A stretch of DNA of 63,667 nt, filler included, from Octopus bimaculoides (Eukaryota), in assembly GCF_001194135.2 (NCBI RefSeq). It is 7 parts of 6 records of this genome, joined end to end, with 100 filler letters (N's around TTAATTAATTAA, not from the genome) between each part and the next. Parts side by side here need not be neighbours in the genome. Positions count along the whole stretch, not along the records: positions 1 to 27,836 come from NC_068982.1; 6 more parts are not named here. One strand, given 5' to 3'. Below the pieces are notes generated by a model. The model was not told where the DNA came from. It saw only the letters and a program-made list of their open reading frames with translations, and searched no databases. Both the position numbers and the translations under genes were made by a program. This document shows, piece after piece, positions 9,809 through 12,639 of the stretch (within the stretch, counting starts at the first letter, position 1; every line of letters starts with the position of its first letter).

Positions 9809-10056
9809 TACATACATACATACATACATACATACATACATACATACATACACACACACACACACACACACACACACACACACACACACACACACACACA
9901 CACACACACACACACACACACACACACACCCGCATGCATGCCCGCACGTACGAGCGCGTGCACAACCACGTACGAATGCACACACACACATACATACATA
10001 CATACATACATACATACATACATACATACATACATACATACATACGTACGTACGTA
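9809..10056. repeat. Compound (TACA)n-(CA)n-(TACA)n microsatellite
   Basis: Directly visible tandem arrays. Confidence 0.95.
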
Positions 10057-10057
10057 C

Positions 10058-10534
10058 ATCAAAACTTCTATCAAGTACAAACATAACAGGCCGTATATGG
10101 ACAGGCAAAAAAAAAACATGTATCGTCATGCCCTGCTGATGTGAAGATCTCTTCAAAAAATCAAAGAGAAAGAGGATAACTACAGACAATTTCGAAACCC
10201 CCAACTTTTATACCCAGATTATAAATTCTCATTTATACCAATATTTGGTGCGCTTGTTTTTGTGAGTAAATGCCAAAGTGACAATCTGGAAAAGGTAGGG
10301 TTTTTAGAAAAAGATCAACCAGCTAACATGCACTTTACAAATTTAATCTGTAAAGTAGAACAATAAAATATGCAACTTTTCTCGTTTTTAAAAATGTGAT
10401 TTTTTAATTTTTTTAATTTTTTTATTTTTGTTATCTACATTCCAATGATGGGGATTTCTATCTCTGTTACAATGTTAGAAATCAGCTCCTTTACAGGAAG
10501 ACTATAAAATAAAAATACAGAAATAGAAGAGAAC
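10058..10534 (+). mobile_element. 5'-truncated RLE-type (R4/Dong-like) non-LTR retrotransposon, family A copy 1
   Basis: Reads IKTSIKYKHNRP...CPADVKIS..KEKEDNYRQF..QLLYPDYKFSFIP..GALVFVS across frameshifts. Same 3' UTR as 11195-11751 and 21202-21447. Confidence 0.75.
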
Positions 10535-10784
10535 ACACACACACACACACGCCCCCTACACACACACACACGCCCCCCTACACACACACACGTCCCCCTA
10601 CACACACACACACGCCTCCCTACACACACACACAAGCACTACACACGCACGCACACACGCACGCACAAGCACACACTAACACATTTATATATACATATAT
10701 ATATACATATATATACATATGAGCATGTATATGTATGAGAAGACATACATAAAGCAAAACATAAATCTGCATACATACATACAT

Positions 10785-11184
10785 GGAGAAATCTGCAGTT
10801 ACTCTATCCAAATTACAAGTTCATGTTTATACCTGTAATTATTGGGGCCCTAGGATATGTAACACACTGCCTAAATACCAATCTTGAGAAAATACGCTTC
10901 TCAAAGCCAGAAAGGAGAAAGTTAATCCATCACTGGAACTGTAAAAGTCTGTAAAACTAGAAGTTTATCATTTAAATATTTATGAGTATGTCTAGATATG
11001 CAACTATATGCATGAGAATACATACATAAAACAAAACATTCAAATTTGCTCATATATATACATACATACATACAAAAAATACCCAGTTGTTGATGATGAA
11101 ATTTTAATGAAGAAGCCTTGGCTCAAGGTTAGAAACCGGCTCTTTCTCTATTGCCAAGAAATCTTGAAATAAAACTGAACAATG
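10785..11184 (+). mobile_element. 5'-truncated RLE-type (R4/Dong-like) retrotransposon, family B copy 1
   Basis: NLQLLYPNYKFMFIPVIIGALGYVTHCLNTNLEKIRFSKPERRKLIH. Distinct 3' UTR ending AGAAACCGGCTCTTTCTCTATTGCCAAGAAATCTTGAAATAAAACTGAACAATG, then ACATACATAC. TACA lies on both sides. Confidence 0.75.
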
Positions 11185-11194
11185 ACATACATAC

Positions 11195-11751
11195 TTTCGG
11201 AAAAAGACTGTCCTGGAATAAAAAGAGAATCTTCCTGTTATTAAATACCAGCCCAAAGGATACTGGTGGAACATTCCCATCAAAGCATTTGTGAAGTTCA
11301 AGCATAACAGGCTGTATATTGTTGTTTGGAACAGACAAGAAAAGAGTATGTACCGTCATAGAGGTCAGCTGTCCTGCTTATGTGAATATGTTTTTGAAAA
11401 TCAAAGAGAAAGAAGGTAACTATGGACAACTGCTTTGAAACCTCCAGCTTCTATATTTGGATCACAAATTTACATTTACACCAATTATAATTGGTGCACT
11501 TGGTTTTGTAAGTGAATGCCTAACTGTCAGTCTGGATAAGCTTGGATTTTCAGAAAAAGAAAATTAACCAACTGACTCGCACATTACAAATGCAATCTGT
11601 AAGTGGAACAGTAAAATAATGCAAGATTTTTCTGAGATTTAAAATGTGCCGCTGTTTTTGTTATCTAGATTCTATCGCTGGAGCTTTGTATTTTTGTTAG
11701 AAATCAGCTCCTTCTTCAAAAGAAGAATGTAAATGATAAAATATAGAAGAG
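11195..11751 (+). mobile_element. 5'-truncated RLE-type (R4/Dong-like) retrotransposon, family A copy 2
   Basis: YWWNIPIKAFVKFKHNRLYIVVWNRQEK..CTVIEVSCPAYVNMFLKIKEKEGNYGQLL*NLQLLYLDHKFTFTPIIIGALGFVSECLTVSLDKLGFSEKE. This is a decayed HNRPD...IEVSCP...K..KY restriction-like endonuclease plus IPIVIGALG C-terminus. Followed by (TACA)n. Confidence 0.85.
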
Positions 11752-11775
11752 ACATACATACATACATACATATAT

Positions 11776-12000
11776 AAAAATCTGTAAAACTTTCCAGAAG
11801 TTTATCATTTAAATGTATATGAGCATGTCTAGATATGCAACTATATGCATGAGAATACATACATACATACATACATACATACATACATACAAAAATACCC
11901 TGTGTTGATGTTGAAATTCCAGTGAAGTAGCGTTGGATCTAGGTTAGAAACCGGCTCTTTCTCTATTGGCAAGAAATCTTGAAATAAAACTGAATAATAA
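11776..12000 (+). mobile_element. RLE-type retrotransposon family B copy 2 (3' UTR)
   Basis: Homologous to 10945-11184; TACA-like sequence on both sides. Confidence 0.7.
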
Positions 12001-12639
12001 CATACATATATACACACCATGCATGCATGGTAGGTATGAATTTTCAATTCAGAGAATAAAGAGAAAAAAAGACGTAATAAAACGTCATTCGGTTTAATTT
12101 ATTTCACAATCGTCGCATCGTCGCAATCGTTATATATCTACCGTCTGCTTTAGAGTCATGTAACTCCTTAGGTTCGACAATTCCTAAAATGTAAAATAAA
12201 CAATGTAGAATAAAGAACGAAATTGTATTTAGCAGATACAAATTATACACTTCTGTAGCAGAGACTGATAGATCATTATTAATCCATTTAAATTCTCATA
12301 TGTACTCTATTTCCTTCCTGCTTTCTACACAAAATGTTTCCTTTTCGGTTTTCCACGAGTAGTTTTCTTTTTTACCAGCCTCTTAGACATGATTTGAAAG
12401 TTAAAATTACGAGTGCAATAAACTAGTTCAAATGAATAAACGTAGACAGGGGTAAGAGTACAAATCTTAACAGAATTCGAGTGGTTAACTGCTACGAAGC
12501 CTCACATTCAAAACTAGCTAAGTTTGATTTTGAATTGAGTACGCCTTAAGTTTCGCTTTCCAATATTTACTTTTTGAGATTTACCTCTGTGCAATAACGG
12601 CTAAATGTAGGCTGTGTACTATTGCTAACCGTGGGCACA

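Follow-up and report, generated by a model that had tools for sequence, protein, structure and literature searches.

A decayed nest of two sibling restriction-like-endonuclease LINE families, probably inserted into (ACAT)n arrays, in Octopus bimaculoides

The stretch analysed here (the window) comprises 63,667 nucleotides of Octopus bimaculoides DNA, filler included (NCBI RefSeq assembly GCF_001194135.2). Within its first part (positions 1 to 27,836, from NC_068982.1) lies a nest at 9809-12018 that contains five 3′ ends of long interspersed nuclear elements (LINEs), all on the same strand and all 5′-truncated, from two families: A (copies A1 and A2) and B (copies B1, B2 and B0). We favour, with a probability of about 0.8, the reading that this is a dead nest of two sibling LINE families carrying a restriction-like endonuclease (RLE) and inserting into (ACAT)n. 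The original prediction, made from the sequence alone, had already described same-strand, 5′-truncated 3′ ends of two sibling families, and BLAST searches and alignments bear out its coordinates.

The junctions between elements and repeats carry this reading. A third family-A copy, A3 (21208-21446, + strand; 83% identity to A2, E 4e-66), is solo: (ATAC)15 followed by AAACAT (21146-21207) lies directly upstream, with unique DNA farther upstream, and CG(TACA)5TAC (21447-21471), or about six TACA units, lies directly downstream. Within the nest, the 5′ end of A1, the first copy, abuts (TACA)14(TACG)3. These are the last segments of a composite microsatellite (9809-10056) that runs (TACA)11, (CA)~42, a GC-rich degenerate stretch, (TACA)14 and (TACG)3, and is presumably the array that was first targeted, at the nest's 5′ boundary. 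The remaining nest copies also abut ACAT runs, which may instead represent the preceding copy's tail. Outside the window, two relatives with intact full-length open reading frames (ORFs) of 1083 and 1158 aa, L015 (protein P0174) and L016 (P0173), come from two different metagenome samples and are bounded by (CATA)n on either side, with one shared orientation. The 3′ ends of L004 and L006 run into long (ACAT)n arrays, and that of a copy from the octopod Argonauta hians (L014) reads ...AAAAAGAG followed directly by ACATAC(AC)n. A second A-then-B stack at another locus, L011, holds an A-like copy with ACAT on both sides and a B-like copy that starts at about position 105. The terminal bases of the elements are conserved as ...AGAG(A), with CATA immediately after.

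The original prediction hinged on TACA being found at 5′ junctions, where it is present in A1, A3, L011, L015 and L016, a small sample. Since perfect ACAT arrays make up under 1% of the window, this repeated contact at 5′ junctions is far beyond chance. Polarity is constant as well: in the six window copies and in L004, L006, L011, L014, L015 and L016, ACAT or ACAY stands on the sense strand, never ATGT. In this small sample, ACAT behaves as a target and not solely as a tail. Seven perfect arrays of at least four ACAT units (9810-21469) were seen in the window, at three loci of which one is unoccupied; all are on the + strand and none is (ATGT)n. The unoccupied array, (ACAT)10 at about 14721-14761 (+ strand), is evidence that arrays of this kind can also stand free of any insertion.

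We resolved the nest by direct reading of 9500-12400, Tandem Repeats Finder, a repeat finder, pairwise alignments and a self-BLAST of four blocks against the whole window. A1 (10057-10534) and A2 (11195-11751) share 72% identity over 372 bp (E 1.5e-51), or 79% column identity in a gapped MAFFT alignment, and B1 (10785-11184) and B2 (11776-12000) share 82.5% over 246 bp (E 1.5e-69). Every A and B copy of the window lies on the + strand; searching the minus strand of the window for either family returned zero matches. Truncation points are unequal, with A1 beginning at A2 position 84 and B2 at B1 position 158; such differing start points within a family are the signature of 5′ truncation. A3 begins further in, at about A2 position 321, and keeps its stop codon (TGA, 21341-21343).

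From 5′ to 3′ on the + strand, A1 contains a decayed remnant of the RLE C terminus, a TGA stop at 10397-10399 and a 3′ untranslated region (UTR) ending in ...AGAAGAGAAC. The spacer that follows (10535-10696) is a degenerate ACAY-type stretch: (CA)n with a 20-22-bp minisatellite, (ACACACACACACGCCCCCCT)x4.6, and then an AT/ATAC-rich repeat. The minisatellite (10537-10634) seems to derive from the (CA)n tract after A1. Next comes B0 (10697-10784), an additional B 3′UTR fragment with 77% identity to B1 positions 192-283 (E 4e-13), which stops at the internal ACAT tract of family B, exactly where B1 starts. B1 carries the coding remnant NLQLLYPNYKFMFIPVIIGALGYV..., has a TAA stop at 10973-10975, and is separated from A2 by the spacer ACATACATAC (11185-11194). 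A2, the longest family-A copy, extends upstream past the RPD motif to ...RKDCPG and has lost its stop (11647-11649); the spacer (ACAT)5 ATATAAAA (11752-11775) leads into B2, whose ORF ends in ...ICKTFQKFII with a TAA stop at 11812-11814. Residual CATACATATATACACAC (12001-12018) marks the 3′ edge of the nest. ACAT or CA repeats separate the copies; the TACA run originally described does not follow A1, where (CA)n and the minisatellite stand.

The 3′UTR of family B contains an internal ACAT tract, of four units in B1 (11060-11075) and nine in B2 (11855-11891), and each B block is therefore one element and not two. This tract, found also in L011 at about 900-925, is a potential secondary target within the element. 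We considered whether the final ~125 bp of B might be a separate element lodged in the tract, and rejected this, as B1, B2 and L011 share the arrangement. An A-B pair forming one composite transcription unit was likewise rejected, since the B truncation points differ (1, ~105, 158). A precedes B in all three observed cases (window 10534-10785 and 11751-11776; L011 709-782), each with its own B truncation point, an order that may be due to chance, at odds of about 1 in 8, or to some preference.

Translation identifies what these fragments once encoded. A2 reads ...KHNRLYIVVW / VIEVSCPAYVN / KIKEKEGNYGQLL / LQLLYLDHKFTFTPIIIGALGFV, and B1 yields the peptide given above as its coding remnant; both are interrupted by frameshifts and stop codons, and all window copies are consequently dead. 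The RPD motif has decayed, to RLY in A2 and through a deletion in A1. All window copies begin downstream of the reverse transcriptase (RT), so the RT domain itself is not in them, and Pfam, which holds no RLE model, returned no match for the window fragment. A search of a large protein collection with the frame-corrected A2 peptide retrieved nine proteins, the best at 70% identity. The longer relatives display a CCHC knuckle, RHD and the series RPDIV ... IEVSCP ... EK..Y ... PIIIGALG ... GTVKI.KTF; P0003 and P0160 carry CCHC, RHD, RPD, E and K, and CRLCK...H....C is visible in P0003. Run against a library of 1.84 billion proteins, a profile built from these sequences picked up 4411 cluster representatives (E ≤ 0.001), several of them full length (1085-1139 aa). 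The homologue searches yielded proteins from metagenomes and one protein from the Argonauta hians genome (L014), the latter in keeping with the cephalopod origin of the window. At the DNA level, L005 has an intact ORF end with 77% identity to A2.

In the full-length relatives P0160, P0046 and P0132, Pfam places RVT_1 upstream of the nuclease (residues ~421-686), and an RVT_1 gene lies upstream of the RLE remnant in L002. Across four full-length relatives Pfam found RVT_1 only, plus a weak zf-RVT match, and no apurinic/apyrimidinic (APE)-type endonuclease. The CCHC residues between RT and nuclease (C936, C939, H948 and C953 in P0160 numbering) are nearly invariant among 11 full-length relatives. 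Compared with solved structures, the full-length relatives match R2 retrotransposon proteins best by sequence (E about 1e-28). From end to end, the C-terminal profile is collinear with the RLE of zebra-finch R2Tg (residues 1270-1381) at a marginal E of 0.07, pairing KPD with KPD, EV with DV, EK..Y with EK..KY and GA.G with GA.G. Modelled with AlphaFold, the C-terminal 240 residues reach a core pLDDT of 78-90, and Foldseek ranks R2Tg (9dou, E 5.6e-5), turtle R2 (9nl2) and silkworm R2Bm (8gh6) highest for the predicted RLE fold, followed by other PD-(D/E)xK nucleases. On the strength of the relatives' domains, the R2 matches and the predicted fold, A and B are the 3′ ends of RLE-type, single-ORF retrotransposons without long terminal repeats (non-LTR), of roughly 4 kb. 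The decayed RLE C terminus of the original prediction was thereby recovered: translation reproduces its peptide motif, and relatives hold RVT_1, CCHC, RHD and (R/K)PD...E...K in one ORF. That prediction further required that the RT not fall in a non-RLE clade; the RT belongs to an RLE-type element.

The N-terminal ~420 residues of the full-length relatives gave no zinc-finger or Myb match in Pfam. Here a motif, G(F/Y)..RLK.LWD..HP.....K.L..Q, is conserved (P0160 ~10-45; P0132; L008 1-130; L015 470-560) and matches no Pfam domain. The motif may mark a region that binds DNA or recognizes the target.

Comparison of 3′UTRs revealed a short hairpin, CUUG-N5-(U/A)(U/G)GUU-N5′-CCGG, which in distant relatives sits 10-55 nt short of the 3′ end. 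Eight aligned instances have compensatory changes in all five pairs of the stem, and 100% of cells pair, compared with 31-41% in slid controls and with 0 of 500 shuffles reaching the observed values; the instances were chosen by a pattern requiring at least four pairs, which inflates these covariation statistics. A covariance model detected the hairpin in L016, a sequence fetched later, at the expected place and with a new stem sequence (33.9 bits, E 2.8e-8), and this is the sole independent match. When the model (R1) was run over both strands of the whole window, its two best matches fell at equivalent sites of B1 (11111-11145, + strand, CCUUG-N5-loop-N5-CCGG; 14.8 bits, E 0.08) and B2 (11926-11960, + strand; 10.1 bits, E 1.9), where the stems have decayed. 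The family-A version (GTTAGAAATCAGCTCC) has diverged and goes undetected by the model. Folds of the last 90 nt of the 3′UTRs are not clearly above shuffles in stability (z about +0.8 to -2.3), and the support is limited to the short hairpin and does not extend to a whole 3′UTR fold. By analogy with R2 and other stringent LINEs, the hairpin is likely an element through which the RT would recognize its own transcript. Separately, the 3′UTR of P0160 (L007 3815-3893) contains a perfect 15-bp inverted repeat, CCTCTTTGATGACTA ... TAGTCATCAAAGAGG.

Both families fall in the R2 group of LINEs, with the R4/Dong or Hero lineage as the likeliest placement; the R4/Dong label is plausible. In a published RepeatMasker table, octopus transcripts match both R4-1_AC/Dong and HEROTn, and both clades are therefore present in octopus. 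The R4/Dong clade is not known to have an N-terminal zinc-finger or Myb DNA-binding domain. The absence of detectable N-terminal zinc fingers here argues against R2, NeSL/Utopia and CRE, and does not separate R4 from Hero. In a low-resolution neighbour-joining tree of the ~115-residue RLE domain, window family A falls with P0001 and window family B with P0002, and both sit in one group together with the Argonauta copy and those elements that ACAT flanks. The sister group comprises L010, L002/L003, L009, L001 and L008. Several of its members are flanked by other tetranucleotides: L010 has (ACTG)n on the 3′ side, L002/L003 have ACTG/ACTC on the 3′ side and ACTT/CCTT on the 5′ side, and L009 has ACTT on the 5′ side. 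These flanks, thin as evidence, suggest that a switch between ACAT and ACTN arrays may have occurred within the lineage; changes of target are known from other target-specific LINE clades. The arrays themselves lie at L002 3375-3520 and 6720-6880, L009 1-75 and L010 6218-6305, with ACTT/CCTT on the 5′ side and ACTG/ACTC/GCTG on the 3′ side.

Several points count against insertion into (ACAT)n as we read it, in addition to the selected hairpin set, its single independent match and the divergent family-A version. The comparison is small, about a dozen copies, and most of these lie on short contigs from metagenomes or Logan. After A1 comes (CA)n and not ACAT, and the (CA)n-rich flanks of this copy and of the Argonauta copy raise the prospect that the preferred target may be ACAY-like or looser. 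The L015 and L016 contigs end inside the repeat, and their 5′ flanks could belong to the tails of copies stacked upstream. L001 and L008, both of the sister group, show no visible microsatellite after the 3′UTR. A metagenome scan added two loci only, both distant relatives with no obvious terminal microsatellite. For the Argonauta locus, (ACAT)15 lies 816 bp upstream of the L014 ATG, and between the two no similarity to the 5′UTRs of L015 or L007 could be detected; L014 was used for its 3′ junction only.

If (ACAT)n were instead an element-encoded 3′ tail, insertion would otherwise be at random sites and stacks would arise from priming on older tails. Short tandem-repeat tails occur in CR1, L2 and RTE LINEs. 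ACAT-type repeats do end every copy, the 5′-flanking runs in the nest can be read as preceding tails, and a terminal microsatellite has been reported for octopus RTE elements (PMC9115989). A tail alone, however, does not account for A3, which has 15 units upstream versus about six downstream with unique DNA beyond, nor for A1, which abuts (TACA)14 with no copy before it in the nest. ACAT also stands at the 5′ junction of the A-like copy in L011 and of both full-length relatives, and the unoccupied (ACAT)10 array shows that arrays exist independently of insertions. We regard this explanation as unlikely; it would merge with insertion into (ACAT)n if priming on pre-existing ACAT runs itself creates a preference.

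The order A, B, A, B also invites an origin by duplication, in which a single insertion of an A-ACAT-B unit was followed by its tandem duplication, through unequal crossing-over or replication slippage between microsatellite runs, and later by deletions that gave the different ends. Microsatellites promote unequal exchange, and divergence is similar in the two pairs (72-79% identity for A1/A2, 82% for B1/B2). The 5′ ends nevertheless differ in both pairs (A1 lacks 84 nt of A2, and B2 lacks 158 nt of B1), B0 and the unlike spacers misfit a simple duplicated unit, A-then-B recurs at the unrelated locus L011 with a third B truncation point (about 105), and A3 is a separate insertion elsewhere, all of which makes duplication quite improbable. 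Still harder to credit is passive accumulation, whereby copies without any preference survive better in microsatellite-rich, low-recombination or gene-poor DNA. This has been proposed for Drosophila Waldo-A/B near CA repeats (PMC3812793), and the window is indeed rich in transposable elements (MULE transposase, Ty3-type integrase, RT fragment) and simple repeats. Survival bias would not, however, explain the exact junctions, at which the last element bases directly abut the repeat, the constant orientation, or the recurrence of the same repeat beside relatives found in unrelated samples, some of them intact and presumably young.

Under the favoured reading, insertion into (ACAT)n, the element would enter (ACAT)n.(ATGT)n arrays through target-primed reverse transcription. 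Target-primed reverse transcription guided by structured 3′UTR RNA is the established mechanism of R2. The element protein would nick the ATGT strand, and the nicked ATGT 3′ end could pair with the 3′ end of the element RNA, ...AGAG(A)(CAUA)n, and prime cDNA synthesis. The RT may be recruited to its own RNA through the 3′UTR hairpin CUUG-N5-UUGUU-N5′-CCGG, and an early stop of cDNA synthesis would leave 5′-truncated copies. With ACAT remaining on both sides of each insertion and within the internal tract of B, an occupied array could be hit again; it would thus stay a target, and a head-to-tail stack in one orientation would result. The end of B0 at the internal tract, where B1 starts, might then record a nested insertion into the tract or a template switch. 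Specificity may reside in the nuclease or DNA-binding part of the protein, or in RNA-DNA pairing, and the cleavage specificity of the nuclease is putative.

Elsewhere in the window, transposon debris comprises a MULE transposase (1135-1605, - strand), a Ty3-type integrase (Integrase_H2C2 and rve; 2154-3005, + strand) and an RT fragment (7042-7662, - strand), with domains assigned to the coordinates in that order and the RVT_1 match of the RT fragment just below the Pfam cut-off. Two ORFs at the right end of the first part (26812-27240 and 27353-27808, + strand) have no Pfam match at E ≤ 0.01; a GDFN-type motif in the former recalls APE-type LINE endonucleases. Three stretches of 50-77 bp (window 19918-19973, 13455-13531 and 291-357) share 78-88% identity with the Argonauta hians locus L014 (12442-12497, 13692-13766 and 13255-13305) and may represent an octopod repeat resembling a short interspersed nuclear element. 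Assembly gaps (N runs) occupy 3869-4336, 14406-14516 and 19832-19912, two of which adjoin simple repeats.

RLE LINEs are mostly target-specific, with microsatellites among their targets (PMC4640811); documented cases are Dong in (TAA)n, Togen in (TG)n and some Hero families (PMC4640811, PMC3812793). Dong-R4 LINEs are already annotated as abundant and recently active in octopus (PMC13282606, PMC8967140, PMC9115989). Octopus vulgaris has five Dong-R4 families with 1129 recent insertions alongside two Hero families (PMC13282606), Dong-R4 LINEs are reported across coleoids (PMC8967140), and a full-length Dong consensus has been noted in O. bimaculoides (PMC9115989). The kind of system described here is already known, and no established concept is changed. 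Neither novelty nor the independent evolution of specificity that the original prediction raised is established, given that microsatellite-targeting RLE LINEs are a known class (PMC4640811, PMC3812793). Beyond that prediction go three points: intact relatives with ACAT on their flanks, a possible switch from ACAT to ACTN, and the conserved hairpin. Our literature search, with Repbase outside its reach, found no ACAT/TACA-targeting non-LTR element besides Waldo.

We hold as tentative, and on balance somewhat doubtful, the broader proposal that A and B belong to an undescribed and widespread RLE LINE lineage, specific for (ACAT)n/ACAY, in cephalopods and other marine invertebrates, with intact members in public metagenomes, a sister group on ACTG/ACTT and a conserved hairpin. 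Such a lineage, if real, would offer a natural series for how an RLE LINE is reprogrammed between tetranucleotide repeats. Independently of that proposal, the finding accounts for part of the microsatellite-like "junk" of octopus genomes as nests of target-specific LINEs, and regions of this kind risk being mis-annotated as simple repeats. A genome-wide preference for (ACAT)n would add a tetranucleotide to the short list of RLE LINE targets, (TAA)n and (TG)n, and would amount to convergence with the unrelated APE-type Waldo on ACAY. Intact relatives, the ACTN sister group and the compact hairpin are experimental material on target choice and RNA recognition, and R2-type elements are under development for gene insertion (PMC13580325).

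Among known systems, Dong/R4 elements (Bombyx mori, Anopheles, Biomphalaria) resemble the families described here in having a single ORF with RT, then CCHC, then RLE, in their 5′-truncated copies, and in inserting into a simple repeat that remains on both sides, with a mollusc member, DongBg (PMC3812793). Dong targets (TAA)n, whereas the repeat here is the tetranucleotide (ACAT)n/ACAY. Hero (HEROTn, HERO-1_HR) is likewise an RLE clade of marine invertebrates and fish, and some families, from a leech (like the octopus a lophotrochozoan), are reported as microsatellite-specific (PMC4640811, citing Repbase Reports 14:311), although most Hero families are described as not target-specific. Togen, a NeSL-related element of fish, is also a microsatellite-specific RLE LINE (PMC4640811), but it uses another repeat, (TG)n, and NeSL/Utopia-type elements have N-terminal zinc fingers, none of which was detected in the full-length relatives here. 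R2 provides the best sequence and fold matches for both RT and RLE (9dou, 9nl2, 8gh6), yet sequence identity is low (11-17% over the C-terminal domain), and R2 differs in its N-terminal zinc-finger and Myb domains and its unique site in 28S ribosomal DNA. Waldo, of the R1 clade (WaldoAg1/2, WaldoFs1), integrates at ACAY microsatellites, a repeat class that it shares with the families here (PMC3812793), but encodes an N-terminal APE-type endonuclease and two ORFs, in contrast to the C-terminal RLE and lack of APE found here. The likeness to Waldo in the choice of repeat is convergent.

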